64,000 nt of DNA from Octopus sinensis. Its lineage: Eukaryota. Shown piece by piece: positions 2,314-50,660 of the stretch. The position numbers were made by a program, and so were the translations under genes. Every line of letters begins with the position of its first letter. The stretch's first letter is position 1. The stretch covers positions 33,914,001 to 33,978,000 of the forward strand of contig NC_043008.1 of NCBI RefSeq assembly GCF_006345805.1, read 5' to 3'. The notes beneath the pieces are model-generated. The model was not told where the DNA came from. It was given only the letters and a program-made list of their open reading frames with translations, and made no database searches.

Positions 2314-3155
2314 CGAGGTCTGATCAATAAGTATCCAGACTGCTGCAATAGTATCAAAGCCAGAGCATGATGAGGGAAACCACATGGTAAAGATCACCTC
2401 CGAATTCTGCTGGGCAAGTGCACAAAGCTCCAACGTTCTAGCTCACTTCTACTGTTTCCAGCACTGCTTGGAAGGAAGGTGTGTAGAGTGCAACCATTGC
2501 CTTGACTATGACAGAGAAAGTTGTCATGGCGATACCTGCTCTGAGGCTCATGCAAAGTTGCAGAAAGTTATGAAGAGGAGTGTATGAGCTGTGCACAAGT
2601 GTACAAGTAGTTCAGTCGTTTCCAAGATGGTAAAAAAAATGTCGATATTGATTACCATTCTGGGTGGCCTGCAACCAGCAGAACTGAGAAAAACATGGCA
2701 GATGTGCATGCAGCAGTGTGGGGAAATTGTTGAATCACCATCCATGAGTTATCAGTGGATGTGCAGATTAGTTACGGTTCGGTTCAGTCTATTATCACTG
2801 AAGTTTTGGTCATGAGACACGTGTCTGCCAAGTTTGTGCCAAAGCTGCTTTCAGCTGACCAGAAACACACTTGGTTCTCAGTTGCACAAAATCCTGATTG
2901 CATCGAGAATGATGAAAACTTTTTGAAAACTTTGCATAGGTCTCTGAGCAGGTATTACTAAGCTTTTGGCAAAATTTAATGCAGATTATCTGTTTAACTT
3001 TGTGGTTATTGTGATGACCACACACCAAACCCCTTCTTTCCAAACACTACTCTAAAAAAGGAGCCAGAATGTTAAAACTTAATATGCATGCACAACAGCG
3101 TTCTAGGTTAATCTGTGCCAAGTGGCCTCATTCTGTGTACCTCAGTTTGCTACTA
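2314..3155 (+). mobile_element. Second copy of the long-TIR mariner derivative
   Basis: TA followed by cgaggtctgatcaataagtatccagac. ORF 2755..2961 has MRHVSAKFVPKLLSADQK. Homologous to 1-785; the right end is cut by a SINE. Confidence 0.75.
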
Positions 3156-3507
3156 TGCTGGTGTGTTTACATCTCCGTAACTTAGTGGGTCAGCTAAAGA
3201 GACCAATAGAATGAATACCAGGCTAACAAAGAATTAGTTCTGGGATCGATTTGCTCAACTAAAGGTGGTGCTCCAGTATGGCTGCAGTCAAATGACTGAA
3301 ACAAGTAAAAGAATAAAAGGAAATGTATATATATCAATTTAAAATGAGGGTGAGAAATTGGATATTGATTTAATTAAACTAACATCAATTTAACACCAGT
3401 GGTCTAGCATATTAAAAATCTGAAGGTTCAGTAAACTGTATTATATACAAATGAAAGGGATGACCACTATGTGGACAACCGTTATGCTAGAAGTAGATCC
3501 GCTGTGG
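3155..3507 (+). repeat. ~350-bp direct duplication of 4620-4973 (SINE tail, short repeat and half of a MITE)
   Basis: Near-identical sequence by eye, including the junctions between different elements. Confidence 0.85.
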
Positions 3508-4912: not shown

Positions 4913-5179
4913 TACAAATGAGAGGGATGACCACTATGTGGACAACCCTTATGCTAGAAGTAGATCCGCTGTGGTCTTACCACTAAGAAACGTTCTCAAG
5001 AAAAATTTAGCAAACACCAGAATGTAAGCGAGCAACACAAATGTAAAGTAACAAAATATAGATAATTTATATTTTGTTACTTTTCATTTTTCTTGGGAAC
5101 ATTTCTTAGTGGTAAGATCACAGCAGATCTATTTCTAGCATAAGGGTTGTCCACATAGTGATCATCTCTCTCATTTGTG
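4913..5179. mobile_element. MITE-like hairpin with ~100-bp inverted arms
   Basis: acaaatgagagggatgaccactatgtggacaacccttatgctagaag...ttctcaagaaaaat versus atttttcttgggaac...ctagcataagggttgtccacatagtgatcatctctctcatttgt. Confidence 0.75.
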
Positions 5180-5258
<79 letters not shown>

Positions 5259-5356
5259 GTCTATGTATGTATATATGTGTGTTTACATATATATGTATAT
5301 ATACATTTAGTAAAAGGTGAAAGATTTATCCGCTTGACATTTTTTTTAATGCCCAG

Positions 5357-5464
5357 ATATTGTTAAGGAACCAACTATTCCATATATTCCATATGGCAGT
5401 ACCTCTAACATAATTACTACAACAGATGATCAAACAGGTTCAGAGGAAAATACATCAGTTCTTG
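5357..5464 (+). CDS. Internal exon A (phase 1-1) of a single-pass membrane protein; Ser/Thr-rich stalk
   Basis: Acceptor ttttttaatgcccag, donor G|gtatgt. 108 bp open: [36 protein letters not shown], with an NTS sequon. In frame with exon B. Confidence 0.7.
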
Positions 5465-5774
5465 GTATGTATTTCTTTGATTTAAAGTGTATATGGAATG
5501 CTTGTTCCCCCTTCTATAAACCTCTTCATCCAACTATCTACATTGTTCATATTCATCCAACTGTCCATACACAGGATAGGACTTGTTTAGCTCAATTTTC
5601 TTCTATCATTTTCACTGATCCCTCTGTAAATTGTGTCATCTCTGTCACAACCTGTAGCCTTCTCAGCCTGCAGCCCCACTTTGTCAAGAACTTAGTAACA
5701 GTACACTATTTCTCCTTGAAACCTATTATTTGTTTACAATGAAGAAAAATAATCCTTTCTATTATAGAAACAAT

Positions 5775-5940
5775 GCCTGAAATTTTGGGGGAGGGGCTAG
5801 TCAGTTAGATTAATCCCACTGCACAGCTGGTACTCATTTCATTGACCAAAAAAGACAAAGTCAACTCATGCAGCATTTAAACTCAGGACATAAGATGGAC
5901 AAAATGCTGCTGAGTATTTTGTCCATCCAGCTAACAATCC
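5775..5940 (-). mobile_element. SINE family B (Nin/Deu-domain-like), degenerate
   Basis: Similar to the reverse complement of the copies at 19915, 30303 and 53445. Confidence 0.6.
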
Positions 5941-6727
5941 TTCCATTTGTTGCCTTAATGAAGAGGAATAATACAAGGAAGAAGCATTACTATGGAAGCG
6001 TTATTGTACCAACATATACAATTTGAATGACCTATGTCAGTTACTTAAAAAGTTACACCTACTTTTGCTTTATTTTATTTGCAGTCCTCATAACAAGTTG
6101 TATACACTATTCTTAAATCCTTTTGAAATGTATTTCCCAAATGAACTTTTCTTTGATTTAATTTTTACATTGATGGATTGGTCTTTATAACCAGATTTAT
6201 ATAATTATATACCGTCTTGAATCACACTACATTTGGTTCATCCAAACTGAACTTTTGCTAGTTTAAAAATTTACTCACAAAACCTTTTCTGTAAATTAGT
6301 TCTACCCATTTAAAATCTGGAGAGTTATGAGAAACCAATCATCTCTCATATTCTACCATCATGCTTGCTACCCAGATAGATAAAGATCCACAAGATAGGA
6401 CTCGTTTAGCTCAATCTTTTTCTGATATATTTTCCTTATTTTTTCACTGATCCTACTATTCCTGTTTCTTTGTTTCCCTTTCTCCCCTTCTTCTCTTTTG
6501 GTACGTTTATTTCTACATTTGTGTTATAACTTCCCTTGATGACCAAAGTGTAACACACAGAAAAAAAAAAGACAGGAACAAGCAGAATAATATAATCTTC
6601 CTTGTTAGAGCTTTAACACTGCTTTTCAGACTTGTGACAATGTTAAATTGAACTGTTGTTTCTAGCAAAAGTATCGTTCACACTTGTGCTTTAAATTCAC
6701 TTCAGAAGCAAAACAATAAACATTGAG

Positions 6728-7034
6728 CAGTGATTTCAAACCAAACAAAACTGCCTTATTTGTCATATATCGCCAGGGAATTTTCTTCAGCGAGGAATTT
6801 CCAAACATTTTGTGCCACTAATACTTTTTAGCTAGGAATTCGCCTCCTGTAGACCTCAAGCTTTTTTTACGCTTGTGGTATACTTACATTCTTTTCAAAA
6901 TTCGGTGGCACACCTGAACTAGAACTAGAACTAAAATTATAAGGAAAATGATTATATTCAGGTTACACTGCGGCACACCTAGCATCATCTTGTGGCACAC
7001 TAGCATGCAGCAGCATACCACTTGCAGAGCACTG
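6728..7034. mobile_element. Possible hAT-type MITE remnant
   Basis: Starts CAGTG(atttcaaac) and ends CACTG; internal gcggcacacc/gtggcacact repeats; no TSD seen. Confidence 0.35.
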
Positions 7035-7789
7035 CAGTAGGTTTCATTGCTGAATATTATCTTTTCTTCCAAAATGTCTTTTAAATAATCACAATAACTG
7101 TGAGTTTCTTTTTTTTCTGTGAATTTATCAGACTTTAAACTTTTCCCTGCACTGCTTTTTGTTTCATTTTTTAAAAATATTTTTTTTTCAAATTACGTTT
7201 TTGTTTCTTGTCCATCATTTCAGCAGAGAGACTCATGAATGAAGGGATTTACATTTTCATCTTACATCTCTGTACCTCTCTGTAGGGGGAAGCTGGTATA
7301 GACGGGGTTATGTTTCTTTTTGTTCTTGTTATGAATCTCTATTCGCAGTTTTGCAGCCATCGAGTTTTCGACTCAAGTGTTTTATTTGATTTGGCTTCTT
7401 GTATCTCTATGTCATAGTAGTTTTTCAAGTAATTTTCCATTTCTTTGTTCAGAGATTTCTTTTTGCATTAAGGTGTCACATATCCCAAGTTTCTCTTTAA
7501 AGCAACGGGTGCGATGCTGTAGAATGTTAATGTATGCTTTGAATCTTTGGTGTGCAAGATTTATTCTGGCTTTTGTTTCTTCATTTGGTTCTGATGTAAT
7601 TTTCTTGGGACGAAATTTTCGTGGAAAAATCACTGGTTCTTGGTTTATCTATTGTGTATGTGTCTGTTAAATTTTCGTTTCTAATTGCTTTCCCGTATGC
7701 TTCTTTTCTTTGATTTAATAAATTATTCCAGCTCTTTTTCATCTGGTTCTTTTTCTTGAATGCTTCACTCTCCAAATGAATTTCATACT

Positions 7790-8170
7790 ATTCCTTAAAG
7801 ATATCTTGTGTATTGGAATGTTCTCTTGTTCGTAGGGTAACAGAGGAGGTTATATTTGGAGTTCTGATAGTGTGTTTGTATATAATGTTTAAGGAAGCAA
7901 TGGAATGATATTTTGTTGCCAAATCAGTAGTTTCGTTCTTGGCCACAATATTCATCCATGCTAATGCAAGCCAATTTGATATGTTAATCTGACCTTCTAT
8001 AGACTTTTGAATATACATATAAATGGCTTTCTGTAAAATGTCAGCCACTTGTACCAATATCCAATTATTAGATCTCTTCCAGGTACCTTCCCATTATACA
8101 GTTTGCCTACAGCTATAGCGAAAGTTTCCAGGTCAATTGCATACATTCTGTTGTTGATGTTGGTACAGAA
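7790..8170 (-). mobile_element. Highly degenerate R4/Dong-like RT fragment
   Basis: Manual translation gives GKVPGRDLIIGYWYKWL and TKYHSIASLNIIYK, paralleling KAPGHDKIPNFWLKYL and NYRPITCLPT in the 42-50 kb elements. Confidence 0.4.
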
Positions 8171-8589
8171 TTCTCTCCTAATTGTAGTTAGTTAGTTAAT
8201 GCTTTAGAGTAATTAGCCATTCCTCTAGAGCTTAATGTGATGAGTCACCACAGTACTGGTTTCCCTTCTATTTAACCTATCCCATCATCCATCTTCTCTC
8301 TCTCCCCCCTCTCTCTTGCTCTAACTCTCTCTCTCCAACTCTCTCCTTCTCTCTCTCCTGCTATGACTAACCAGTGACACTAATCTTTCCCTTCCACCTC
8401 CTCATGTCCCTTCCATTACACCAATCCAATATTGTTTCCTCTTGACTATCACTGTCTCACAACGATAAAAGTGTTCTTTCCACCCTATTTTAACTATTCC
8501 CTCAACACCTCACCTAGAGTCATCCTTTTTCCTCTTATTCTCCCTTTCAGCCAGCGCATGGTTGAGATGACACAAAAGCATGACAACCT

Positions 8590-8785
8590 CTCTAGTGTCG
8601 ATGTCAGAAAACCTGCATCCAGTACACTTTGTAAAGTGGTTGGAATTAGGAAGATTATCCAGCTGTAAGAACCATGCTGAACCTGAGATATCTGAGCAAG
8701 ACATCATCCTTTAATCTCTTGGATTCTGTCAAACCATCCAGGCCATATCAACATGGAAAACTGACATAAGATGTTGATGATGGCA
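8590..8785 (+). mobile_element. RTE 3'-end-like short repeat
   Basis: gcatccag...gtcaaaccatcc...catggaaaactgac...gatgatg, similar to the tails at 54700-54880 and 63150-63240. Confidence 0.5.
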
Positions 8786-8860
8786 TATATATATGTATAT
8801 ATATATATGCATGTATGTGTATGTGCATGTAATTTATACACCCCCACACACATACACACA

Positions 8861-8898
<38 letters not shown>

Positions 8899-9075
8899 AA
8901 TCCAAGAAAGTTAGGGGTTGTGAATCCATCCCACTAAGGGATAATATCTATCAAATATACTGTTGGTAGAATACCCAATTATTAATACACAAGTGTTTTT
9001 TATTGCAATGCAATAACATTACCTAGTGTATTAAATGGGTGAAGGTAAAGAGATATTTTACCATTAATTTATATT

Positions 9076-9616
9076 GCAAATAAGAAAAGGGAGGAGAACA
9101 ACTTTAGGACATTAAAAATGTTAACTTATTTATTTATTAAACTGATAATTATAATAACATATATACATATAGTATATTATTCTATGCATATAATATAAAG
9201 ATACAAGTAATGATTAAAAACCATGAATATAAATTAGTAAATAACTTACAGCTGTTTCAGCCCATAGATAAAAGTATCTCATTCTGCCTATATTAGTCAA
9301 GTGTATTCAGGTAATAGGCAGCTGAAAATGAGGTAGCCTAGAGATATATATATGTAAGTACCTCATTTTCATCTGCCCATTACCTCAATACACTTGACTA
9401 ATATAGGCAGAATGAGATACTTTTATCTATGGGCTGAAACAGCTGTAACTTATTTTACTAATTTATATTCATGTTTTTAAATAATTACTTGTATCCTTAT
9501 TTTATATGCATAGAATATGTGTATGTATGTTGTTATAATTAATAAATAAATAAGTTAACATTTTTAATGTCCTAAATTTGATGAACAACTATTGTTCTCC
9601 TCCATTTTCTTATTTG

Positions 9617-9617
<1 letters not shown>
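9076..9617. repeat. Foldback with ~265-bp inverted arms, related to the Penelope-like repeat at 21.9-22.3 kb
   Basis: ttacagctgtttcagcccatagataaaagtatctcattctgcctatattagtcaagtgtatt is mirrored by aatacacttgactaatataggcagaatgagatacttttatctatgggctgaaacagctgtaa; centre near 9345. Confidence 0.85.
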
Positions 9618-9656
<39 letters not shown>

Positions 9657-10460
9657 GTACATACCTACCTACATATGTACATATAAACATTCAGACATAC
9701 AAACAAACAAATAGCATACACAACAGAATTCATCGCAATTTTTGTCTACCATTCACAAGATATTGGTCAACACAAAACTATTGGAAAAGTAATTTATTCA
9801 CCAACCCAAGATTTTGCAGAGGGGGATTGAACCTGGAATCACATGGATTTGAAGCAATCTTTTTAACAAACAGTAATGTCTTGTGAAATAACAGCTGTCC
9901 TTATTGTAACTGTTTTAGATTGATTAGATGGTAGTTGTTTTTTTTCCTGGTTAACTCCATGCTTTTGCAGTGTTTCTTACCTTCTTAAGATGATACAGTG
10001 TGATTCGAGGAACGTTTGGTTGCAATTACATGCTGATTCCTTGATTTGTCTCTTTTACTCTCTGGTAATTAGTTGCTAGGATCCTACAGTGTGGATTGGT
10101 GGTAAATTCAGTTACTTTCATACTGGATGGAGGTGTGGATTCAGTGTCTACTGTTCAGAAAGACAGAATACCTCAGACTCCCGAATCAGTCCAGATGATG
10201 TGTGAGGAGTGAGAAAGCAGCAAATTGGGTTGATGTTCATCAGAACAATGACTTCAGAGAAAGAATATTTGAGATGGCTCTCCTCCTAAATACAGTATGA
10301 AAGGTGATTAAAATGATTCATGGTGTTTGAATGAATTCAAATAATATTAAAGGTAACAGAAAAGCTACAAATTGTTGTAATGTTTGACCATTAAAGAAGC
10401 AAAAATCAAACAAGCAAATTCTCTTTTTTAATGCTTTCCATTTTTCTCTTAACATTTCAG

Positions 10461-10527
10461 TAATTCTTTGCGGTGTTCTTATACCAACAATAGTCCTGCT
10501 TTGTATGTTATGCATCATAGTTACCAG
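10461..10527 (+). CDS. Exon B (phase 1-2): transmembrane helix
   Basis: Acceptor tttttctcttaacatttcag, donor AG|gtatgt. 67 bp encoding (V)ILCGVLIPTIVLLCMLCIIVT(R). Confidence 0.8.
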
Positions 10528-10559
10528 GTATGTAATATAAGACTACATCTTACTTGTAG

Positions 10560-11880
10560 AACACTAGACAGAAGGACTGGTTAAATTGCTTTGGGTCTTA
10601 TTTGGTCTGGACCTCCTGTTGGACAAGAACTTGGAGTGGGTGACAAACTTGGTAGCCAGTCTCCCCCAGAAATAAGCAGAGAGAAAGCTGTCATCACTAC
10701 TGTCATTTACTACTATCTGACTGTTGTCCCTTGCCCTGTTTTCTGGTTGATCAGCTGGATCACTTGCTCTTCCCACTTCCTGTGGAAGGGACATGTCCCA
10801 CTCCTCAGTCGGTCCATCGGCTGTCAACAGGTGCTGAGTGGGGGACTGGGAATGCCATGGCTAATGATATGCAGACATGTACTGAGTCTGCAACACCTCT
10901 AGCACTACCTTGATGGTGAGCAGGTGTGCCCACCATTTATCAGTCAGGATTTTCTGCAGCTTGTCTCATTGATGGAGCTACAGTCCTGAATTAAGCATAG
11001 ATCAAGAAAGGGCACTTTGCATCTGGAGTGTAAACAGGGTCTCACAGCCCTCTGCTAGTCAGGCAATGTAGTCAGTGGAAATTCTACATTGGAATTCTAT
11101 AGAAGATTAGTGGTGGGCAAGAGCAACGATGCCTTCAGAGGAATTCTAGGAAGGATCAATTATCTGGTCTTTTATTGAGCAATTTCAGGCTGGAGTCTAT
11201 CTATTATTTCCAGAAATCCTTGGCCTGATAGTGTTACCAGGGAGCTCTGCCAGTTCAAGACAAGCTTTACAAGCTTGGAAGTGCCATCAGACAGACATGT
11301 CCTAGATGTGGATAGGGCAATGAAACTTCTCTGCATGCACTCATTTCAAATTTGTGGAGCATTGTCAAACAGCTGTTGATGCATGTAGGACAAATCTGGT
11401 TATCAGACGACTCCATCATGAGGATCACCCAGCCACCTTCTTTTGGCCATGAAGGGAAGGCAGTTTTCCTCTGTCTGATAGCTATGGCGAAAGAGGAAGT
11501 GTGGTGGGCATGGTTGAAAGGATTGAAGACAGGTACTTTCTCTTCAGCTGAGTCCTCATTGACTTTCTCAAGTTCCACTTGAAAAGGAAAATGAGGGTGG
11601 TGAGGAAAGTGCTGCCTCCTAGTATTGATGTTGAAAGGTGGGTGAATGTAGTGAGGATGATCCATGTGAATGGGCCTACTCTGAACATACACTTGTAAGC
11701 CAGGAGGGTTGAGAAGATGAGAGGTGCTTGCTTGAGGTGCCTTTGGAAGTCAGGGTGAGGAAGATGTGTGGAGTTCCTTGGTTGTCCTTAGGATGAACTC
11801 CCATTATGTGGAGAATTTTATTGTTTATTTGTTGTTGGTATTTGTTATTGTTTAATTGTATGTACAAATTGTTGTGCTAA
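10560..11880 (-). mobile_element. Decayed Penelope-like RT remnant (tentative)
   Basis: Scattered minus-strand peptides such as CPFLDLCL and HHQGSARGV resemble Penelope RT motifs; many stops and frameshifts. Confidence 0.3.
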
Positions 11881-11947
11881 ACTACCCTTGCATTGCACCA
11901 TCCCTGTATGTTTTGTGTTCAGATCTTGTGGCCAATAAAAAGAAGAT

Positions 11948-12480
11948 CATTAATATCATTATTATTATCATTATTATCCGATGAAAACACACAGATTATT
12001 TTGCTGGGTATGATGGAAAGTGTCAGCTGTCCACAGCCAGCAGACTAAGGTGACACTTGTTTGCTGGTCATGCTTCAAGAACATTGCAAAGAATTCTTGC
12101 AGTTTCAAGCAATGATGATTTTTTTAGGTTCTTCTACTTTTACATTTGTACCAATCCTTTTGATCTGAGTTGGTAGTTGAGTGCTGATACTTCCAAGTAC
12201 CCCAGTTACTATTGGTACCACATCTACTCTCCTCAATGACCACAACCTTAGTATTTTCCACTTCAAATTGTCGTAGTCGTTCAGTTTCTCTTCTTTCTCT
12301 TTGATCCTGTTGTCACCGGGTCATGCTATGTTGATTATCATGCATGGTCTTCCTTTTTTTTTTCCACCACAACAATGTTCAGTTTCCAATGTCTGGTCAG
12401 GTGATTGCACTGAATCATTGCATCCCACAAGATTTTGCACTTTTCATCTTGGTGATTCCTTCAAGGGTTTGCTCATACCA
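11948..12480 (-). mobile_element. Old R4/Dong-like 3' fragment (REL endonuclease region) ending in (TAA)n
   Basis: Manual translation KILWDAMIQ..., PGDNRIKEKEEKLNDYDNLKWKILRLW, ...LLETARILCNVLEA; imperfect (TAA)n tail at 11948-11977. Confidence 0.65.
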
Positions 12481-13030
12481 CATCTTTTTTTATAGGCTGT
12501 GATAAGGTGTTAAGTTAGCAGAAGTGTTACCATGTCAGACGAAATACTAAGCAGTATTTCTTCTGGTTTTATGTTCTGCGTTCAAATACCATCAAGGCTA
12601 ACTTCACCCTTCATCCTTTCATCCAGCTGAGTATTGGAGTCACTGCAACTGACTAACCCTCTCCTCCCAAATTTCAGACCATGAGCCTATAAAAAAGATT
12701 ATTACTATTATTATTAGGATGAATCAAACTGACAGTTGTTGTCATGTTAAATACAATATTTAGCAGCATTTCTTCTGGATCTTTACATGCTAAGTTCAAA
12801 TACCACTGAAGTTAAATTAGTGCTTCATTCTTCTGGGGTTAATATATGTACCAATTGACTCACAACCAGCCCCAAATTACTGGCCTTGTTCCTAATTTTG
12901 AAACCATCATTATCATTATAAAAAAAAATTAGTAAGAAGTATTATTAGTTCTTTTTTTGTGATTATTAACAAAATTTAATTCTAAAGTCTACTTAATGTT
13001 GTCTGATTAAATATGCTAACATTTTCTTAG

Positions 13031-13472
13031 ACACAGGTACAAGAAATCCAAATCAAATGTGATATCTGAAGAAATGACCGACAAGAGTACCACAAGGACC
13101 TGTTTACCAGAGGAGATAGAATCACAACCAAACAATACTTTGAAACAGCAAGTAGCAAAGATATTGCCCCCAAATAATGCACATTCAATTAGAAATGATC
13201 CTTGCATGATGGAAAGGGAATTGCATTCCACTGATGTATATTCAATTGCAAAAGGTTTATGTATGGTTGATGATAATGTTGAAGAATATATGTATATGGC
13301 TAAAAAGGATATATATTCAAATGTAAATGATAAATATGAAAATGGCTCAGATACTGTTCACAGTGATTTACGTTTCACTGAGAATGAAGGATATTATGTA
13401 AATTCAGCTGAAAATGATTTATGCTCTGGTAAAAATGGCATGTATATTGATATGGAATCTTGCCATAAGTGA
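13031..13472 (+). CDS. Terminal exon C (phase 2): cytoplasmic tail rich in tyrosine motifs
   Basis: Acceptor gctaacattttcttag with a ctaac branch point. The frame extends ORF 13059..13472 upstream to (R)HRYKKSKSNVISEEM; stop TGA at 13470-13472; AATAAA near 13661. Confidence 0.8.
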
Positions 13473-14074
13473 TTAAGATAACTTACTTGAAAGTGTTTTC
13501 TTCTAAAAATTCAATCTAATTATATCTAAAGAAAACAGATACATAAAACAACCCTCAGTGTCAACACTTCAAAAACCTAATAGAATATTTGAAATATGTT
13601 TTCACTGAAATAATTAAACAAATACCAGCCCCTGCCACACAATTTATATACACTCCTATAAATAAACAAGTATTTATAATCATAACTGTTATAATAGTTT
13701 ATATAAAACATTGGTTTGGCAAACTGTAGTTTCCTTTGAAATTTGTGGTGTGAGACCAAATGTAGCACTTTGTACTGCATTGATGTTTCTTTTGTCTCTC
13801 TTCCTTCTCTTTTTCTTTCTTTCTCTCTTCCTTTTATCTTTTTTTTATCCTGATTTTATTCTTTTACTTGTCTTTCTTTTGTAATACGTTATATTAAGGA
13901 AAAATAAGAATAAGAGATATTTTTTCATACAATAAATTTGGAAATAATATTTTTAAGGCTCAATTCCATTAAACTATTAAATTTTAATATCTTCGATTAA
14001 TTTTCCTTAATATAATTCACAGTTCAATATTTGATGCTGAACAGTTGTATTTATTATTTTAATTATTAATTAAG

Positions 14075-14959: not shown

Positions 14960-16792
14960 TTAAAAGAGAGTGGATTTCCTATGTAGGCAAGAGACAGGCC
15001 CAAAAACCTGCCCTTTTTTAATTAAATGAATGAGCTTAGCCAGTTTCTGCCTGAAAACCCTTGCAATAATATCATGGCGATGACAGTACTGCTGCCCTGG
15101 GAGAAGTTCTTGCGCTACCTCAACCCACTTTGGGTTACATGTAAAGGTAATGAATAAATCGGGTCGCCCATAATGCCGAACGTAAGTCATAGCATCTTGT
15201 GTTCGCTCGTGCATGTACCGTGGGCCCCCTGTATAGGTTGAGGGGAGAATGCACATTTTGCCGATATTGCGGGCGTCAGTGTCATTCCTGATGCCATCAC
15301 GCAAATGGATGTAGGAGTCTGAGCGCAGCTGCTTCTGATTCAATTTGATGAAGAACAGTCTCTTGGACTCCATCTTTGCAGCCATGTCAACTACAAACTG
15401 GTGAAACAGTTCCCGTGATCTGTGCAGGGGGTTGAAATCATTATGCCTTGTCATGAAGCGGTATGAGTAAAAAGCCATACATGAAACGGTTTTAGATGTC
15501 GCAGCCGAGGGCTCGTTTGGTTTGTGGTGAGGAATGCCGAAATGGTACCCGTCTTCTCCATACGGAAAAAGAAGGGGATACTGCAGGGCATCATATGACC
15601 GATGCGTCTCATTAATACGCTGAAGACCACTGTCGCGGCTTTGAAGAACTATGTCTCGCTGCTTGTGCTGTTTACCATGGAGAACTATAGCCACTTCATT
15701 GTACGAAGGAGCGTTATATCGGCGCGCGTACTCCCCAGAAGGCTTTTTGTCAGCATCGATGACAATGGTGAATGTTGGTGAAGGGGCTGTTTCCAAGGCG
15801 TATTTGAAACTGCGAATATAGCTGTTGTGGTCATGAAGCATGTTTTGCAGAGTGAGCAGCACGTCCCTGTCGAAATTGTCAGCGTCAGTGTTTGCAGGTT
15901 GTGGAATTACGTCGAAACGCAAATCAAGTTGCCTATTGTAATTTGTAATGAAATAAATTTGAAGGAACGAAGGTTTGCAATTTTGTAGTGGCTGGAGTGG
16001 CCCAATAAGGTGGTACACCTGGCCCTGGACCTTGAAAGAAGGCATCCAACCAGTTTCTCTGACAACGTTAGCCCCGAAAGAAGTCATCTGAAATGCACAA
16101 TTGTACTTCCTGATGAGTTGAAGGAATTTTGATGACCTTGAGGTGGAACCAGTAAGTAATTCCTTCAAAGGGTCTGGCAGCTCCCGAAGAGGGGGCAAGC
16201 TGACCTTACCGTTTAAGCAGCACATCGCAGGTGGTTCCCCAGCCCACTTTTTAGCATTGCAGAAATGGCAATTGAAGCACATTTCCCCAATATTTATGTC
16301 AGCGTGCATCGAGTAATTGAAGTTGGGCTCATACTTGAAAGCACGTAGATGCCAGTAAGGGCTGTTTGGACTCGTCAGACCGCGGCGTCGACTGTTCCGC
16401 TGGAATGTAGAACGTTGCTGGTCTGAGTTGTGGGAATGTGTCGAAAATGTTGAAGCAGCAGTAGCCGCAGCGTTTGTAGCCAGTCAAGTGGCCCTTTGTT
16501 GTGGGTCCTCTGAAGCCCTTTGTGCAGCAACAGCAGAAGCCTTTATGGCGCTGCGCTTCGACCTTGTTTCCGGACCGTCTGAAGCCGTGGAAGCAGCATC
16601 GTATGAAGCCATTTTTGCTAGGCGTGCGTTGCGCTGTTGTAAATTTTCAGCAGCTCGTGATTGCGCTGAACGTAAGGCGCTCTGTGAAAGTCTGAAAGCC
16701 TTTTTGTCGGAAGACTCGTTTGCGATAATCGCCTTTTGCGCTGCTGCTGCTGCAGTATGGCGGCCGAGGCGACTTCTCTTTTTCGGTGGCAT
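14960..16792 (-). pseudogene. Truncated Helitron RepHel ORF: N-terminal repeats, Cys motif, helitron_like_N and Rep motif 1; no helicase
   Basis: ORF 14960..16309 contains CHFCNAKKWAGEPPAMCCLNG, FKVQGQVYHLIG, YDALQYPLLFP, GGPRYM and RPDLFITFTCNPKW. ORF 16484..16792 (MPPKKRSRLGR...) is the frameshifted N-terminus. Confidence 0.88.
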
Positions 16793-17311
16793 TTTATGTG
16801 AAAAAGAAAGGGTGAAAGTTACTTAAAGATAGAAATTGTAATGTGAATGAAATGTGGAAAAATGTAAACCGTGGAAGGAAAAGAAAGAAATATTAGCAGC
16901 TGAAAGAAATTTTTTATGCAAGTATAGCGACAGAGTGTGTAAAATGTATTTAAATTTTAGTTAAAAGCAAGAAAATAAAGTTAGATTTGCAAGAATGGAA
17001 GTAGTTTACGTACATGTTCGAAATGTAAAGTGTTTTAGTTGTTTAATCAAATATTTGCGTAAAGTGTATAGAAACGTAAATTGAAAAAGAAAATGAATTG
17101 AAATGTTTAAGAAAGGAATTTGTTTACATACATGTGTCAAATGGCAAATGTTTGTGCAGTTGTCCGAAATGGAACCAGGGTAAATGTGTGGAACTGATGT
17201 ATTATAATGAATAGTCCTTCTTGAACTGAAAACCAGTGGTGTAGCATATAAGACCATAGGGGATCTTCTTCTAGCAAAAAGGGATGACCAGTCTGAATGG
17301 CTCATCCCTGT

Positions 17312-22600: not shown

Positions 22601-24828
22601 CATGATCAGTGTCAGACGTATCTGTGTGCGCCCCTCTTGCCAAGAGTGATCATGCGGTCCTGAAGTTCGTCATGCACAAAACTTTTTCTACGCCCACGAC
22701 TACTTCGCTGCCGCATAGAGTCTTCTCTGCAATTAATCTTGAAATTCTAACCGAGGCTTTCGCGCTTCTGGACTGGCGATCCCTGATGACGTTGTCCTCA
22801 GTTGACGAACTATGGTCATCCCTCAAAGCATATGTAATCTGGTTGACTGACCAGGCAGTTCCCGTTGGGCTTCCCAAGAAGAAGAAACACAAGCCCTGGG
22901 TGACGAAGAAGGTTAAACGAGAACTTCGACTCAGAGATATTGCTTGGGCTGAATTCAAAAATCTGGATTCGACTGCAGCTTTTGAGGTGTACAAAACTCA
23001 ACGAGACCGAGCCGTGAAAATTGAAAAGGAAGAACACTTCAGATATGAATACAAAATCGCGGTAAACGCCAGTAGCAATCCAAAAACCTTCTTTGCCCAT
23101 GTCCAACGGAATTCCCGCTTGAACAACCAAATTGCAACTTTGGTAGACTCAACAGGCGTATCGATTGAGGACCCTTATCAACAGAGTCAATTATTTGCCG
23201 AGGCTTTTTCAACTATTTTCAAACAAGATGATGGTCGTGAACCCCCTCCATTTGATAGATCGGTACCTCCAATGCTTCGATTGGTCATCACGCGGGACAA
23301 AGTCGAACGCGTTATTCAAGGCCTCGATGTCAACAAGGGTCACGGCCCTGACGGCATACACCCACGGGTTATCAAAGCGTTGGCTCCGGTCATCTGCGAG
23401 CCCTTAACACGTCTATTCAATATGTCATTGGCGACGGGTGTTATACCTGCGGACTGGAGAACAGCGATAATCTGCCCAATTTTCAAGAAAGGGAGCTGCG
23501 AAGACCCGCTTAACTACCGACCAGTTTCCCTTACATCAATAATCAGCAAGATGTTCGAAACCATCCTTAAGAAAAGTATGATGCTCCACCTCCAAAACAC
23601 AGTCTCTATCTCTGATTCCCAACACGGCTTCGTGCCGAAGAGATCATGCTTGACCAACTTACTGATAATGGAAGAATTGGTGACGCGCATCCTCGATGAT
23701 AGTGATGCTGTTGACATCGTTTTATTGGACTTTGCCAAAGCTTTTGACTCAGTAAACCACCGCCTATTACTTGTCAAGCTTCAAGCATATAGTTTCCATC
23801 CGGATATTGTACGATGGGTTGGTGCCTCCCTCTAAGATCACTCCTTCCAAGTCCAAGTTAATGGTTTGCGGTCCGACGTCTCCAGTGCGAGCAGTGGCGT
23901 GCCTCAAGGTTCAGTGCTTGGGCCCTTATTGTTCTTAGTCTTCATAAATGACTTGCCCGACGATCTCACGCAACACACCCTTCTATTTGCCGATGATGTC
24001 AAATTGGTCGCTCCTCGCGGTGATATAGAGGATCTTCGTCGATGCCTCCACCAAATTTGGAGATGGTCTAACGAATGGGACCTGTGTCTGAACGTATCAA
24101 AGTGCTGTTGGCTCTCCTCCTGCAACTCAACTTGATTTCGAGTCTGCTGCTGGAGAGGACCGATCAGGTAAAGGATCTGGGTATCTTGGTGGATTCCTTC
24201 TTTTCGCCTTCGGCCCAATGCGTCCATGCTGCCAACAAAGCACGCGGAGTTCTGTTCTTGATTCAAAGTCATTCGGAATGCTCACAGCAGCCATATTCCT
24301 ACCGCTCTATGTCACGCTGGTGAGACCCATATTGGAGTACGGGATTCAAGCCTCTTCTCCTTATCTCCTCAAAGACATACAGCATCTCGAAAGAGTCCAG
24401 AAGCTGGCTACCCGCATGGTTCTTGGTCTCAAGAATTTGTCTTATGAAGAAAGGCTGAAGACGCTCGACCTTTATTCTCTAGAAAAACGACGACGCCGTG
24501 GTGATCTCATTCTTGCTCACAACATCATAAGCAGAAAGTGTAACCTCTCGAAAGAGCTGTTCTTCACTCCTGCTCCAGAGCGTCGGCTGCGGGGTCATTC
24601 CAAAAAGCTCTATCGGCGACGATTTCTCCGTCCGGTTTGCGGATCCGTGGAATAAGCTGCCAGACGAGATGGTGAAGATGCCGACGACCGCTCGGTTCAA
24701 AGTCTCCCTTGTCCACAAGTGGCCTGAACTCTTTACATGAACACCACTCTGTAGATAACTCCATGTCCCCCTAATTGGCCTTGCTTTTTGCTTTTTGAGC
24801 CAAAAAATTAACTAACTAACTAACTAAC
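22600..24828 (+). mobile_element. 5'-truncated CR1-clade LINE (end of APE plus RT), decayed, with a (TAAC)5 tail
   Basis: SDH end of APE; GPDGIHPRV, NYRPVSLTS, QHGF, LDFAKAFDSV, SGVPQGSVLGPLLF, LFADDVKL, LVRPILEYG, LSYEERL; stop at 23833 and frameshifts near 24.1-24.3 kb. Confidence 0.92.
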
Positions 24829-26459: not shown

Positions 26460-26700
26460 GGATCTTTTCAATCTGACCAACAGATTTTTTAATGAATTTT
26501 TTTGTAACTAAACACTTTGAAACTTCAGATACTGGTAGAATGTGTCACACTGAACAGAGTTTACTCTTAATGTTTTTGACAAAATTTTGTATTTTAGAAG
26601 TTATTTTGTGTTAAAGTTGTTGTATTTGGGTAATTTTAACCAATCAATGGCATGTATTCAGCTGAAGAAAATTACTGCTGCTTTTGGCGAACAACAACTT
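26460..26700. repeat. Diverged relative of one arm of the 57.6-58.7 kb foldback element
   Basis: ggatcttttc, aaacttc..atactggtagaatg and aattttaaccaatc occur in the same order. Confidence 0.55.
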
Positions 26701-40499: not shown

Positions 40500-41250
40500 G
40501 TTATTATGGTTCTGTCCACTTCACTGATTCACCACATCACCTTCTTTCTGGATGGAATAGCACTGCCACCTAGCCTCCCCACCAATCTAATTACCCTGCT
40601 CATTCCAGGCTGAGTAGGAGATGCAAAAATCTCAAAATTGCCAAAACTAGGTGTTAAAGCACATGTGTTGGAAATTCTGATCTTGCTGATGGTTGTTACA
40701 TCCAAGGTGATCTTGCTTCCAGGATAATTCCAGACCATATGCACTTATGCATCCCATTCTCAGAACCACCAATCTGGCTGAATGGTAATGATGAGAAAAG
40801 GAAACAAGTTACTTACCCATTTTGTTGTTCTGGAGATGATGTAATTCAGTTTCCATGGAGTTTTAGGTTTTATTTGAAAAGTCCTTTTGAAGCCTTCTAC
40901 TGGACCTTACATTCAAACTTCCTACATCCCTCTATATTTTATATGTCCCCAAGTAAGTCCAGCCTTATTAATTTCATTTTTTTTTCTTGTTTTGCACTTT
41001 GAAAGAGCTGTACCGGACCCTCTATTTAATTGCTTTTAGTTTCCCTTCTATGAAGGGCATCAAATTTTTATTTGTGTTCCTTATCAGCACAAAGTTTGAA
41101 GTGGATGTATTTTGTTGTTGTTGTTGTGTTTGTATATCAGTCTACTATGTTTTCTTTTTGTTGGGGTGTATGTTGTTGGCGGAAGTAATCATTGTGGATT
41201 TCTTTATGCTGGCTGTGACTGTAGTTTCAATGATGCAGTTATGGGCGTGA
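40500..41250 (-). mobile_element. Degenerate LINE (RTE-like) APE endonuclease fragment, tentative
   Basis: Minus-strand peptides VGSLNVRS, IISRTTKW and FASPTQP parallel the APE motifs NVR, ETKW and YAPT. Confidence 0.35.
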
Positions 41251-41740: not shown

Positions 41741-42353
41741 TACCACACAGCCATGCTTGCACCTACCACACAGCCATGCTTGCACCTACCACACAGCCAT
41801 ATTTTTATTTTTAATTGGTTGTCCCTCCTCACAAGATGATATTTACACATGGGAAAAGTCCAACATAGGAGGGAGCATAAGAATGTTTGTGTGTGTTTGA
41901 AAAAGTTAGGGATAGAGGAATAGTAATCAAATGGGAGTTTGTATATTATTTACATTATTTACACTCAATGGATATTTGTCCTCATCCTTACATTAGTCGA
42001 AAGTAAATAATGTAAATAATGTAAATAATGTACATAATTCCTCATCTCTTAAAGATAGAACTGTAAGAGGGAGTTTGGTTGAACATTTTCCTAGGTGGTA
42101 TGTTTACACTCTGCTGTGGATGTCATTGTTGTTGTTACTAATGTTATTGGTGCCAGTGCAACAGCTGTTGTCCTTCTTCCCTTTACTGCTGTTGCTGCTG
42201 ACATTACTGTTGTACACTGTTGCTGCCAGTGGGGCTTCAACATCAGCAGTATTCTTCACGAGGACCTCTATATTCCCAAGATAAGCCTTTTGTCCAACAC
42301 TGGAACAATTCAATTCTACAATCTCAATAACTTAATAATAATAATAATAATAA

Positions 42354-44927
42354 TCAACTCCAACCCCAAAAAGTTCTACCAAGAACTGGGAAAAGATAAA
42401 ATAGAAGTCACTGCAGCACCAACGGCAGAAGAATTGGAAGAATTCTGGAGAGAAATATGGTCGGCGAACGAACAGCCAAAAAAAAGGAGTATCAAAATAA
42501 CAAACTCGGCATCTGAACAACTTTGGACCCCCATAACAACTGAAGAGGTCACCCAGGCACTGCAAAAACTAAGCAACTGGAAGGCACCTGGGCATGACAA
42601 GATCCCCAACTTCTGGTTGAAATATCTAACAGGAATGCACAAAAAGCTGGCTGAAAACTTTAACAGCATACTAGCAGAGCCAGAGACAATGCCTGAATGG
42701 CTCACGAAGGGGAAAAACCATCTTAATTCCCAAATCAAATGAAACAGCAAAACCAGAAAACTACAGACCAATAACCTGCCTCCCTACTATGTTCAAGGCA
42801 TTTACTGCAGTGATATCGCAAAGGCTGAACAAGCACCTGGACGAAAACAAACTGTTCCCAGAAAAGCAGAAAGGATGCCGCAAAGGCTCATATGGCTGTA
42901 AAGATTAACTAATGATTAATAAAGCCATAACTGAAGACAGCCACAGAAAGAAGAAAGGCCTCAGTATGGCCTGGATTGACTACAAAAAGGCGTTTGATAG
43001 CATCCCCCACACATGGATCCTCGAAACACTAGCCATTAACAAAGTAGCACCAACAATCATAAAATTCATAGAGCACTCTTTGAATAAATGGCAAACAGTC
43101 CTACACCTCCAAACAAAAGAGGGACTCATGAAAACCAAAGACATCCCTATTAGAAGAGGAATATTCCAGGGAGACACGCTCTCTCCACTCCTTTTCTGCT
43201 TGGCACTGTCACCTCTATCTGATATGCTAAATAGAACTGGATGCAGATATAAATGTTACGGCAAAACCATCAGCCACCTTTTATATATGGATGACCTAAA
43301 ACTATACACTGCAAATGACAAACAGCTGGAAACACTATTAAAGACAGTTCATGGATTTACCAAAGAAATAGATATGAAATTTGGATTAGAAAAATGCGCC
43401 AAAGTAACCCTGAAAAGAGGAAAACTAGTTAAGAGTAACAACATCACACTAGATAAAACCAATGAAATAAAAGAATTAGACCAAAGCCAAACTTACAAAT
43501 ACTTAGGAAGACACAACACACACAAATGAAAGAGAAAATAAAAAAAGAATATTATAGACGAGTTAGATCAATACTAAAAACAGAGTTCAATGCTAAAAAC
43601 AAGATAATAGTTATCAACACTTTAGCTGTCCCAGTTATAAGTTACAGCTACAATATCCTTAACTGGACACGAAATGAACTGTCCAAAATAGATAGGAAAA
43701 CAAGAAAAATACTGACAGGATCTAGGATGCATCACCCAAAATCTCACATAGAAAGACTATATATACAACGTATAGAAGGTGGTAGAGGCCTTATACAGCT
43801 GGAAAACTACTATAAAATAACCACCGTAGGACGGCAAAAATACCTACTTCAGAAGGAAGGAAAACTGATCCAGATAGCAGCAAAACACGAGCAAAACAAA
43901 AAACTGTTCTCAGTATTTAAGGAAGCTGACAAATACAAACAAGAAATCATACCACCTAATAAACACGAAGAAGAAGAAGAAGATGATGAAGAAACAACAA
44001 AAGCTATAAAACAAATGAAATCCAAACTAAAAATAGAACAGCAACGAACCATGATAAAACGATGGCAAGAAAAGCCCCTTCATGGTAAATACTGCACTAA
44101 ACTAAACGCAAAAGAAATAGACAAAGAAAAATCCCAGCAATGGTTGAGAAGCTCAGGACTCAAAGCAGAAACAGAGGGATTTTTAATTGCAGCACAAGAC
44201 CAAAGCCTCCCCACCAGAAATTACCAAAAACATGTAATGAAAAGAAATATAACAAGTAACTGCAGAATATGTGGAGATGGATAAGAAACAATAAATCATA
44301 TTATCTCTAGCTGCCCAGTCCTGGCTAAGAAGGAATATATTCACAGACATGACAGAGATGGAACCTACATACATTGGAAGCTATGCCAACATTATGGAAT
44401 AACAACAGAAAAAAGATGGTATAGGCACACACCAGAAAAGGTCACAGAAAACGAGAAAGCAACCATACTCTGGGATATGCCGATACACAGAGATAGAGAA
44501 ATTAAGGCCAACAGACCAGATATAGCTGTCAGAGATCATGAAGAAAAAAAATGCTTTCTAATTGATGTATCAATACCGGCAGATGACAACGTGTCTCTAA
44601 AAGAAATGGAGAAACTCTCAAAATACAAAGACCTGGAAATAGAGGTAACCAGAATGTGGAATCTGAAAACAGAAACAATTCCTATCATAGTAGGTGCATT
44701 AGGCATGATAAAAAAATATTCAGACAAATACATAACAAAAACACCAGGACTTACAAATACATATAACATACAGAAAATTGCACTACTAGGCACTGCACAC
44801 ATCCTACGCAGAACACTTTCCATACAATAGCCATCAGAGCATCACAACAAATCCCAGCACATACCCAAGGCACACAGAGCTGCGCTCGGTAGTGAAGTGA
44901 AAGCACGCTATAAAAATAAAACTACTG
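42354..44927 (+). mobile_element. 5'-truncated R4/Dong-clade non-LTR retrotransposon (RT, CCHC, REL), copy 1, inserted in (TAA)n
   Basis: WKAPGHDKIPNFW, NYRPITCLP, WIDYKKAFDS, GIFQGDTLSP, YMDDLKLY, CRICG..H..SC, RPDI...IDVS; 16-nt deletion at ~43510 and stop at 44282; (TAA)n on both sides. Confidence 0.92.
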
Positions 44928-45009
44928 AATAATAATAATGATAATAATGATAATAATAATGATAATAATAATGATAATAATAATAATATCAATAATAATG
45001 ATAATAATG

Positions 45010-45043
<34 letters not shown>
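44928..45043. repeat. (AAT/GAT)n microsatellite
   Basis: Directly visible. Confidence 0.95.
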
Positions 45044-45045
<2 letters not shown>

Positions 45046-49956: not shown

Positions 49957-49997
<41 letters not shown>

Positions 49998-50008
49998 TGA
50001 TGATGATG

Positions 50009-50051
<43 letters not shown>

Positions 50052-50635: not shown

Positions 50636-50660
50636 AATAATAATAATAATAATGATGATG

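Follow-up and report, generated by a model that had tools for sequence, protein, structure and literature searches.

The window, a stretch of 64,000 nucleotides from Octopus sinensis, contains parts of two genes of one family, whose members lie in a tandem array. Gene A is represented by three exons. Their AG/GT splice sites and phases (1-1, 1-2 and 2-stop) are as an earlier note on this DNA had described them, and joining them gives exactly the 204-residue peptide quoted there, which ends in MESCHK and a stop codon. Gene B, the next family gene, is represented by its first two exons. The features are as follows (slashes mark exon boundaries):

5357-5464, + strand: gene A stalk exon, 108 nt, phase 1-1 (cccag/ATATTG...TCTTG/gtatgt)
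10461-10527, + strand: gene A transmembrane exon, 67 nt, phase 1 to 2 (tttcag/TAATTC...ACCAG/gtatgt)
13031-13472, + strand: gene A terminal coding exon, phase 2-stop (tcttag/ACACAG...AAGTGA), stop codon at 13470-13472
13473-13666, + strand: probable gene A 3' UTR, with candidate poly(A) signals ATTAAA at 13613 and AATAAA at 13661
40739-40840, + strand: gene B first exon, probably 5' UTR, matched by tblastn with residues 1-33 of P0004, donor GT at 40841
53782-53830, + strand: gene B signal-peptide exon, ATG at 53785, encoding MNRIFILLSLLQIVY, donor A/gtaagt

The stalk exon encodes a serine- and threonine-rich segment with one NTS sequon. It corresponds to an annotated exon of the O. vulgaris gene model P0001 and is 98% identical, with identical splice sites, to positions 26587-26694 of the O. 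vulgaris locus L001 and 4953-5060 of the O. sinensis locus L003. The product of the transmembrane exon is VILCGVLIPTIVLLCMLCIIVT, with a CxxC near its cytoplasmic end; 66 of the 67 nucleotides are identical in L001, L002 and L003 and 64 of 67 in L004, with identical AG/GT sites. Kyte-Doolittle hydropathy peaks at 3.0 on VLVILCGVLIPTIVLLCML, the sole hydrophobic segment of the peptide. This helix carries three cysteines, and AlphaFold modelled a helix over peptide residues 30-71 (core pLDDT 84-87). The terminal exon encodes a basic stop-transfer sequence (RHRYKKSKS), a conserved juxtamembrane segment of approximately 55 residues (SEEMT...NDPCMME), a degenerate tyrosine-repeat region and a conserved FTENEGYYVNSAEND segment. 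Its acceptor is followed 6 nt later by another in-frame AG, so the exon might instead start at 13037. The first 45 nt or so of the probable 3' UTR fall inside a tandem duplication present in both O. vulgaris and O. sinensis. The type I single-pass layout proposed earlier thus stands, with an S/T-rich stalk, a single hydrophobic segment, a basic stop-transfer patch and a non-catalytic tail of 147 residues; all nine tail tyrosines were found, including those in YSN, YEN, YVN, YMYM and YIDM.

A given stretch of 147 codons would stay open with P ~1.5e-4 at the stop frequency of the + strand (0.058). The same exons, with splice sites identical to those of the window, occur in the O. vulgaris and O. 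sinensis loci, and P0001 (88% identity) joins them at the same junctions. The exons are therefore beyond chance, and we consider it confirmed that they are genuine parts of one gene, for whose product they specify the stalk, the membrane anchor and a tail rich in tyrosine. They had been called hidden; this does not apply in general, since the O. vulgaris annotation already joins all three.

Nine family members (P0001-P0009) were recovered. The transmembrane segment and tail matched P0001-P0004 with E values from 1.7e-105 to 1.3e-41, and the Argonauta protein P0009 matched P0004 with E=1.6e-5 in a library of 1.84 billion proteins. Searches of 5.8 billion and 1.84 billion proteins returned matches only from Octopus and Argonauta and no real relatives outside octopods, in agreement with the lineage-specific family that had been predicted. 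The search for paralogues in other cephalopods revealed copies in O. vulgaris and O. bimaculoides and a homologue in Argonauta hians, alongside further copies in O. sinensis itself. In the Argonauta homologue the transmembrane exon is likewise 67 nt long, phase 1 to 2, and the tail carries ENELYS and FVNS..ND motifs. Exon boundaries (stalk phase 1-1, 67-nt transmembrane exon phase 1 to 2, single tail exon) are identical in L001-L004. The paralogue L002 has AA in place of an acceptor AG and relies on the following AG, 6 nt further on, a compensated shift that keeps the frame.

The homologues are uncharacterised. They comprise the O. vulgaris 'hypothetical predicted proteins' P0001, P0004 and P0005, O. 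sinensis LOC118765596 and LOC118765597, O. bimaculoides LOC106876762 and LOC106876757, and A. hians GAB1606122.1, and we found no described function or paper for these octopod gene models. All are computational models: P0002 and P0003 are truncated, P0004 lacks half a domain, and P0005 is a fusion that merges two neighbouring family genes. The Octopus models share 88-90% identity with the window copy over stalk, transmembrane segment and tail, as well as exon boundaries and tandem arrangement. The window copy has one tail exon; the counterparts closest to it in O. vulgaris and O. sinensis carry a 454-bp tandem duplication and a terminal frameshift. Full-length members consist of a signal peptide, one to three beta-sandwich domains, one or more S/T-rich stalk exons, the 67-nt transmembrane exon and one tail exon; each domain, Cys-containing and approximately 117 residues long, is encoded by two exons. 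Judged from these sequences, the family is one of hitherto uncharacterised, octopod-only, putative type I membrane glycoproteins of the LOC118765596 type.

The tandem arrangement is also apparent from gene B. Its first-exon region is collinear with the O. vulgaris locus L002 at approximately 95% identity, and its signal peptide matches those of P0004, P0005 and P0006. The other exons lie past the end of the window, and in L002 the corresponding next exon is 13 kb further on. Gene order in the O. bimaculoides locus L005 is the same as in the window. The window is also rich in transposable elements, including a Helitron, reverse-transcriptase fragments and microsatellites.

The ectodomain of gene A had been expected upstream of the window, and the collinear O. 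vulgaris counterpart L001 bears this out. There, two ectodomain exons (7909-8160 and 17179-17271) lie upstream of the point aligned with the window start, the nearer approximately 1.4 kb and the farther approximately 10.7 kb beyond it; no signal-peptide exon was seen within the L001 DNA examined. The family ectodomain unit of about 117 residues carries six cysteines and several N-glycosylation sequons. AlphaFold predicted an eight-strand sandwich (pLDDT 70.8, pTM 0.67), a medium-confidence model built on seven close sequences. In Foldseek searches of the PDB with this model, all 50 of the 50 matches listed were PLAT-bearing proteins (lipoxygenases, pancreatic and lipoprotein lipases, Rab6IP1), the best with E=1e-4 and TMq 0.75. 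The PLAT profile PF01477 gave no match in Pfam at E up to 10, and sequence and profile searches of the PDB, also at E up to 10, gave no PLAT match and no sequence-level match to any other chain. We therefore assign the ectodomain provisionally, and at the level of predicted fold only, to a PLAT/LH2-like class, rather than to the EGF, Ig, lectin or WSC domains suggested earlier.

The predicted family repeat has the size and eight-strand beta-sandwich of PLAT/LH2 domains, which are found at the N-terminus of lipoxygenases, at the C-terminus of pancreatic and lipoprotein lipases, in polycystin-1 and in Rab6IP1. The model superposes on the PLAT domains of coral 8R-lipoxygenase and of lipases with TMq 0.57-0.75. 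Unlike known PLAT domains, it has no sequence-level match, and it contains six cysteines and sequons. In the octopod proteins the domain, encoded outside the window, would be extracellular and carried on a mucin stalk with a transmembrane anchor, an arrangement of which we found no description. PLAT domains of secreted lipases bind lipid and lipoprotein surfaces.

Gene A is a real, lineage-restricted, receptor-like gene. With a little more confidence than doubt, we favour the explanation that its three exons are the 3' half (mucin-like stalk, transmembrane helix and cytoplasmic tail) of one tandem-array gene of an octopod type I glycoprotein family with a PLAT/LH2-like ectodomain, and that its disordered, fast-evolving tyrosine-repeat tail would act as a phosphotyrosine docking scaffold. 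AlphaFold pLDDT is below 50 across the terminal exon product, which is accordingly predicted to be disordered. The ancestral unit of the tail is an (E/D)N(D/E)-hydrophobic-Y-S repeat with L, V or I before the tyrosine and a variable copy number; the window copy keeps the canonical (E/D)N(D/E)-x-YS unit only in degenerate form, ENELYS having turned into ERELHS, for example. Src-family kinases favour tyrosines that lie in an acidic stretch and directly follow an aliphatic residue.

The repeat content of the window, and the fact that the exons were first picked by eye, could raise the suspicion that ORF fragments and splice-like sites line up here by chance or that the exons belong to a transposable element. 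However, the same exons appear in independent gene models of two other species' annotations, homologous copies are confined to the family gene array, the length and phases of the transmembrane exon are conserved in Argonauta, and none of the three exons has a transposable-element domain match. This reading is effectively refuted, its probability being close to nil. It is more conceivable, if still unlikely, that the family is real and gene A a redundant, decaying or already non-functional paralogue whose 3' exons are open only through youth. All comparisons gave a tail dN/dS of approximately 1 (range 0.6-1.9, with 1.4 for O. bimaculoides), and the coding tail exon is no better conserved than the intron and 3' flank, sometimes worse (p=0.001 by Fisher's test for L004 and L003 copy 1), so there is no sign of purifying selection on the amino acids of the window copy. 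Across three Octopus species and the window, eight tail copies keep the reading frame open, but the second tail copies in L001 and L003, untranslated and without an acceptor site, are open as well, making ORF retention at approximately 5% divergence weak evidence. The window has about 95.5% identity to each of L004 and the L001/L003 unit, as expected of one more paralogous unit in the array, and the ectodomain exon of the O. vulgaris counterpart has a 4-residue deletion and has lost one of the six domain cysteines. The same cysteine is missing from the annotated O. bimaculoides member P0008, however, so its loss may mark a subfamily rather than decay. Decay is further opposed by the splice sites, every one of which is intact, and by the indels of the tail exon: six of seven are multiples of three, compared with 14-19% in flanking non-coding DNA (binomial P ~3e-4). 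This argues that the tail is translated, presumably also from the window copy. The tail copy that occupies the corresponding place ahead of the next family gene in O. bimaculoides has stayed open despite 47 substitutions and three in-frame indels.

The remaining alternatives concern what the tail does. The earlier note had read it as 'Grb2/PI3K-type', in a CD28/CD19/LAT-like or MEGF10/Draper-type immune or phagocytic receptor in which pYxN recruits Grb2 and pYxxM recruits PI3K p85. Motif counts by themselves are only mildly unusual: in shuffled tails, at least three YxN occurred with p=0.039, at least two YxxM with p=0.076 and both together with p=0.004, all post hoc. The expected conservation in relatives was found for YSN, the only motif kept as far as Argonauta (window clade, O. 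bimaculoides and Argonauta), but not for the others. YMYM results from a 6-nt slippage (TATATG) and is missing from O. vulgaris copy 1, O. bimaculoides, L002 and Argonauta. YIDM is kept in O. bimaculoides and replaced by YIDV or YSNE in other copies; YEN is deleted in O. bimaculoides; YVN is kept there, while its tyrosine is phenylalanine in L002 and Argonauta. Over seven tails, beginning with the window, YxxM numbers 2, 2, 1, 0, 1, 0 and 0; L002 and Argonauta have none. NPxY and ITAM (YxxL/ITAM) motifs are absent from all seven, no ITIM is present either, and neither Pfam, run on full-length relatives, nor Foldseek, run on the ectodomain model, detected an EGF or Ig domain. The CxxC at the cytoplasmic end of the transmembrane helix does recall palmitoylated adaptors, which carry one there. 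On the tail sequences, a Grb2/PI3K signalling role is weakly supported, and we hold this receptor type to be improbable. It is also rather doubtful that the tail is no SH2 docking platform and works mainly through non-phosphorylated tyrosine signals, either YxxPhi endocytic sorting motifs or NxxY ligands for PTB/FERM adaptors; the protein would then be a receptor for endocytosis, scavenging or adhesion. Of all tyrosine contexts, NxxY recurs most consistently across the family (three times in the window tail, ten in L002, three in Argonauta and two in O. bimaculoides), YMYM, YSNV and YIDM of the window tail also fit YxxPhi, and the lipid binding known from lipase PLAT domains would suit an uptake receptor. 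Yet the canonical NPxY is missing, YxxPhi fares no better than the SH2 motifs in conservation (the L002 repeat region has none and Argonauta has one), and the acidic, aliphatic context of the tyrosines is classically that of tyrosine-kinase substrates.

Among known proteins, the vertebrate lymphocyte transmembrane adaptors LAT, PAG/Cbp, NTAL and SCIMP resemble the octopod proteins in probable mode of action only: both are single-pass, with Cys-x-x-Cys at the cytoplasmic end of the transmembrane segment and a non-catalytic, disordered tail with many tyrosines, including YxN sites. Unlike these adaptors, the octopod proteins have a folded ectodomain, and there is no homology between the two groups. 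Homology to SCIMP (PF15050) was rejected at 13.8-17.4 bits against a cut-off of 27 (E 0.006-0.08); the Pfam matches to SCIMP and TMEM154 are both below threshold and driven by the transmembrane segment. A CD28-type receptor, with an IgV ectodomain and a conserved YMxM/PxxP tail, was likewise rejected, as there is no Ig domain and YMYM occurs only in part of the Octopus clade. CED-1/Draper/MEGF10 are also single-pass with a non-catalytic, tyrosine-containing tail, but the comparison fails because the octopod family lacks their hallmarks, the EMI/EGF-repeat ectodomain, NPxY and YxxL/ITAM.

In the docking-scaffold explanation that we favour, the ectodomain would bind a ligand, which might be a lipid or the surface of a membrane, and the tail tyrosines would then be phosphorylated, provided that the window copy is expressed. 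Once phosphorylated, the tail could offer several docking sites to SH2 or PTB adaptors and work as a multivalent scaffold, much as transmembrane adaptor proteins do. Such phosphotyrosine docking is plausible, and an SH2 domain of the Grb2/Drk type could bind at YSN, the single conserved site.

We recovered all three exons that the earlier note had joined into the C-terminus of a single-pass receptor (gene A). With phases 1-1, 1-2 and 2-stop, they splice into exactly the 204-aa peptide it had quoted.

Exons of gene A (window coordinates)
5357-5464, + strand: stalk exon; acceptor cccag, exon ATATTG...TCTTG, donor gtatgt
10461-10527, + strand: transmembrane (TM) exon; acceptor tttcag, exon TAATTC...ACCAG, donor gtatgt
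13031-13472, + strand: tail exon; acceptor tcttag, exon ACACAG...AAG TGA

Only one segment of the peptide is hydrophobic, VLVILCGVLIPTIVLLCML (mean Kyte-Doolittle 3.0); it is followed by the basic patch RHRYKKSKS and by a tail of 147 aa. As described previously, this tail has nine tyrosines and includes YSN, YEN, YVN, YMYM and YIDM. AlphaFold, run with few homologues, modelled one long helix at residues 30-71 (core pLDDT 84-87) and gave pLDDT <50 outside it, which fits a stalk and tail that are predicted to be disordered. Long TA/CA microsatellites at window 5158-5310, 1112-1466 and many further places produce spurious YIYIYI and CVCVCV ORFs; one of these repeats stops ~45 nt short of the acceptor of the stalk exon.

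The first homologue search, covering 5.8 billion proteins, returned four Octopus models. One of them, P0001 of O. vulgaris, has 265 aa, is 88% identical and splices these three exons at identical junctions, with an ectodomain exon added upstream of them. The two O. sinensis models, P0002 (LOC118765596) and P0003 (LOC118765597), contain the TM and tail exons. The fourth, P0004 of O. vulgaris, is a paralogue of 333 aa that is more distantly related and has a signal peptide. Acceptors and donors of the stalk and TM exons are identical to the letter in the window, in the O. vulgaris loci of P0001 and P0004 (L001 and L002) and in the O. sinensis locus of P0002 (L003). We could therefore discard the readings of the three exons as chance ORFs or as exons of a transposable element, since P0001 joins the same exons and the splice sites are the same across loci. 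At the tail exon the window has two in-frame AG acceptors 6 nt apart (13029-13036). In L002 (about 92241-92249) the first AG has become AA, and the model takes the AG 6 nt downstream, losing RH and keeping the frame, a compensation expected only of an exon that is spliced and translated. Judged from its sequence, the window carries the C-terminal half of a real, lineage-restricted and fast-evolving receptor-like gene.

A profile search extended the family to a fused O. vulgaris model (P0005), which runs from the tail of one gene into the signal peptide of the next, and to O. bimaculoides LOC106876762 and LOC106876757 (P0006-P0008 and P0011). HMMER, run exhaustively over 1.84 billion representatives, added an Argonauta hians protein (P0009, GAB1606122.1, 234 aa, E=1.6e-5). 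In the Argonauta gene, a signal peptide is followed by several small exons rich in S/T and then by the TM and tail exons. The TM exon has 67 nt, an entry phase of 1 and an exit phase of 2 (AG before gt), exactly as in Octopus, and the tail can be aligned with those of Octopus at ENELYS, YM.EN(E/D)LYS(N/T) and the C-terminal ENE..(Y/F)VNS..ND. The O. bimaculoides locus (L005) has an assembly gap, an N run at 2803-3402, at the expected position of the TM exon. Neither the search of 5.8 billion proteins nor the HMMER scan of 1.84 billion representatives found true relatives outside octopods. The only non-octopod match, a Treponema protein with ENDPFSI repeats (P0010), was set aside as a low-complexity match. 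Pfam searches with the spliced peptide and the full-length relatives gave only sub-threshold, TM-driven matches (TMEM154, Comm, SCIMP), and a literature search for the LOC identifiers of the family, or for octopus together with the PLAT domain, found nothing relevant. Gene A belongs to a group of octopod gene models that are uncharacterised.

The ectodomain had been placed upstream of the window, and this was borne out: in the O. vulgaris counterpart, the two domain exons (L001 7909-8160 and 17179-17271) lie upstream of the point aligned with the window start, at distances of ~10.7 kb and ~1.4 kb. The O. bimaculoides proteins carry one to three copies of a ~117-aa unit, encoded by two exons per copy, with six cysteines and several N-glycosylation sequons. 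Its first part reads GYCWRITFYIS..SGTSNY.TVQLINDETRVFSN.LSC..KC.RGSQPSFDFCTPQIDPVKELKLNET...W.LES and its second part I.LMNLNTSA.YRC.L..P.A..KGCKL. Pfam and PDB sequence searches with the family ectodomain gave no match, and PDB sequence and profile searches with P0006 and with A2, an ectodomain alignment cut from P0006, gave nothing meaningful. A profile search with A2 had no match at E<=1, not even P0006, which is in the database and is the source of A2; this search is thus uninformative and does not speak for an absence of relatives. AlphaFold modelled the ectodomain as an eight-stranded beta-sandwich (pLDDT 70.8, pTM 0.67). Among the 50 matches listed by Foldseek against the PDB, all were proteins bearing a PLAT/LH2 domain, the beta-sandwich of lipases and lipoxygenases: coral 8R-lipoxygenase (E=1e-4, TMq 0.75), pancreatic and lipoprotein lipases, 5-, 12- and 15-lipoxygenases and Rab6IP1. 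We provisionally regard the ectodomain as PLAT-like, at the level of the fold and not of the sequence profile, as the AlphaFold model is of medium confidence. The EGF, Ig, lectin or WSC domains that had been proposed were not borne out. The fourth cysteine of the PLAT-like domain is replaced in L001 7909-8160 and in LOC106876757 (P0008), which read FDFNT or FDFST instead of FDFCT, and the L001 exon also has an in-frame 4-aa deletion. The cysteine replacement may mark a subfamily or decay.

We compared the tyrosine motifs of seven tails, including L004, a further O. sinensis locus, and the first copies of a tail exon that is duplicated in L001 and L003.

Tyrosine motif counts in the seven tails
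Window: YxN 3, YxxM 2
L004: YxN 3, YxxM 2
L003 copy 1: YxN 3, YxxM 1
L001 copy 1: YxN 3, YxxM 0
O. bimaculoides: YxN 2, YxxM 1
L002: YxN 1, YxxM 0
Argonauta: YxN 1, YxxM 0

Fate of the individual window motifs
YMYM: TATATG-TATATG slippage; elsewhere a single YM
YIDM: YIDV in L001 and L003 copy 1; YSNE in L002
YEN: lost through a deletion in O. bimaculoides
YVN: tyrosine replaced by phenylalanine in L002 and Argonauta
(I/L)YSN: kept in the window clade, O. bimaculoides and Argonauta

Conservation of the motifs was therefore partial, with YSN reaching Argonauta and YMYM, YIDM, YEN and YVN varying. The Grb2-plus-PI3K specificity suggested for the tail finds no support in conservation, as L002 and Argonauta have no YxxM, YVN has lost its tyrosine in both and YEN is deleted in O. 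bimaculoides. In shuffles of the window tail the motif enrichment was mild (p=0.039 for YxN and 0.076 for YxxM), and the joint value of 0.004 is post hoc. What recurs in the tails is the unit (E/D)N(D/E)-(L/V/I)-Y-S. Its canonical form occurs about seven times in L002, whose tail has tandem ~14-aa ACMVENDVYSIGEG repeats, three times in Argonauta and twice in O. bimaculoides; the window tail has degenerate copies only (ERELHS, TDVYSI, KDIYSN). The copy number of the unit shifts by in-frame gain and loss of repeats. NxxY occurs 3 times in the window, 10 times in L002, 3 times in Argonauta and twice in O. bimaculoides. Src-family kinases prefer an acidic run and an aliphatic residue at position -1, and this context makes phosphotyrosine docking a reasonable candidate mechanism for the tail.

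By analogy, gene A would work like a non-catalytic single-pass receptor or a transmembrane adaptor of the LAT/PAG type, with which it has in common the CxxC at the cytoplasmic end of its TM helix and a disordered tail with multiple tyrosines. It is not homologous to these adaptors, and the Pfam match to SCIMP is below the cut-off. The likenesses drawn earlier to Draper/MEGF10 and to CD28 did not hold, since EGF repeats, NPxY and ITAM are all missing for the former, and the IgV domain and the conserved YMxM for the latter. None of the seven tails contains NPxY, ITAM, ITIM or ITSM.

The family genes form a tandem array. Window 1-28122 is collinear with L001 and L003 at ~95% identity. Window 37131-64000, which contains the start of the next family gene (gene B), lines up in the same way with the 5' portion of L002; the remainder of gene B lies beyond the window end.

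Exons of gene B (both collinear with L002/P0004)
40739-40840, + strand: first exon, 5' UTR-like, probably 5' UTR
53782-53830, + strand: signal-peptide exon, ATG at 53785, reading MNRIFILLSLLQIVY

The same order, a tail exon and then the signal-peptide exon of the next gene, is found in O. bimaculoides. In O. vulgaris L001 (33726-34650) and O. sinensis L003 (12084-13010), most of the tail exon is tandemly duplicated over 454 bp, equivalent to window 13064-13517 and extending past the stop codon into 45 nt of 3' UTR. A 5-nt deletion in copy 1 changes DMESCHK-stop to DVLP-stop. The window has one tail copy, closest to copy 2 of this duplication. It is 95.4-95.6% identical to the L001/L003 unit and to L004, and L001 and L003 are 98.25% identical to each other; the window unit may be a further paralogous unit of the array or come from a sister species.

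In all pairs compared, the dN/dS of the tail exon is close to 1 (0.6-1.9 between Octopus copies; dS=0.092 and dN=0.128 against the O. bimaculoides copy upstream of LOC106876762), and its amino-acid sequence is under no visible constraint. An alignment of the seven tail copies at the nucleotide level showed that the frame is nevertheless kept: of seven indel events, six have lengths divisible by three (3, 9, 6, 27, 3 and 3 nt), as against 14-19% of indels in the flanking non-coding DNA (binomial P ~3e-4), and one, a 5-nt deletion located 19 nt ahead of the stop, shifts the frame. This argues that the tail is translated, with an amino-acid sequence that is weakly constrained. Weak sequence constraint is usual for disordered regions with short motifs. 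We consider it rather unlikely that the copy in the window is a redundant paralogue or one in decay.

We also considered positive selection on the tail. The window exon is 94.4% identical to that of L004, with flanks at 97.8% and 98.8%, and 80% identical to that of O. bimaculoides, with flanks at 90-94%. The exon diverged more than its flanks in comparison with L004 and with L003 copy 1 (p=0.001 for both); compared with copy 2, the closest counterpart, exon and flank diverged equally (p=0.59). The TM exon and the 400 nt of intron flanking it at either end (window 10061-10927) are 96-98.5% identical in all paralogues (L001-L004), and L002 shares this identity though its distal tail is only 67% identical. 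Such high identity, introns included, suggests gene conversion within the array and a mosaic history. As this mosaicism would explain the faster exon equally well, we make no claim of positive selection.

Of the earlier proposal, the exons, the peptide and the upstream position of the ectodomain stand; the guesses at the ectodomain and the Grb2-plus-PI3K specificity do not. What is new is how the family proteins are built, with a PLAT-like domain outside the cell joined to a variable tyrosine-repeat tail, and not a demonstrated signalling pathway. Fragmentary 'uncharacterized protein' models become one coherent family, in which a PLAT-like ectodomain sits on a mucin stalk, followed by a TM segment, its exon conserved across Octopoda, and by a tyrosine-repeat tail that varies. 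The molecular basis of cephalopod immunity and cell-surface recognition is poorly understood, and to our knowledge most lineage-restricted cephalopod genes have been assigned no fold or mechanism. Two hypotheses are now open to test, namely that the ectodomain binds lipids or membranes and that the ENDxYS repeats act as phosphotyrosine docking sites. An extracellular PLAT domain, if confirmed, would be an unusual use of that fold; otherwise the result is a correctly annotated, fast-evolving, lineage-specific membrane protein gene. A broader reading, which we consider a long shot, is that octopods have their own clustered receptor family that joins an extracellular PLAT-type lipid- or membrane-binding domain to a phosphotyrosine-repeat tail of variable number. 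Gene conversion and unequal crossing-over, and possibly also positive selection acting on the tail, would have diversified the array, which would serve pattern recognition or self/non-self sensing of lipid or membrane surfaces (microbes, apoptotic cells, gametes).

The introns are rich in microsatellites and contain a Helitron and reverse-transcriptase fragments. A 449-aa ORF at window 14960-16309 (- strand), 1.5 kb downstream of the gene A stop, has a Helitron_like_N domain (E=2.3e-46), and non-LTR reverse-transcriptase ORF fragments (RVT_1, zf-RVT) lie at 22609-24655, 42095-44284 and 46084-49525 (all + strand). Window 42539-45045 and 47557-51816 both match a single stretch, L002 12910-17118, which points to a local duplication in the window relative to O. 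vulgaris. In O. sinensis, a 591-aa model on the same strand spans L003 and L004 over >326 kb (CM016870.1, 33.70-34.02 Mb). It has no match to the family profile and is either a host gene with giant introns around the array or a fused model.
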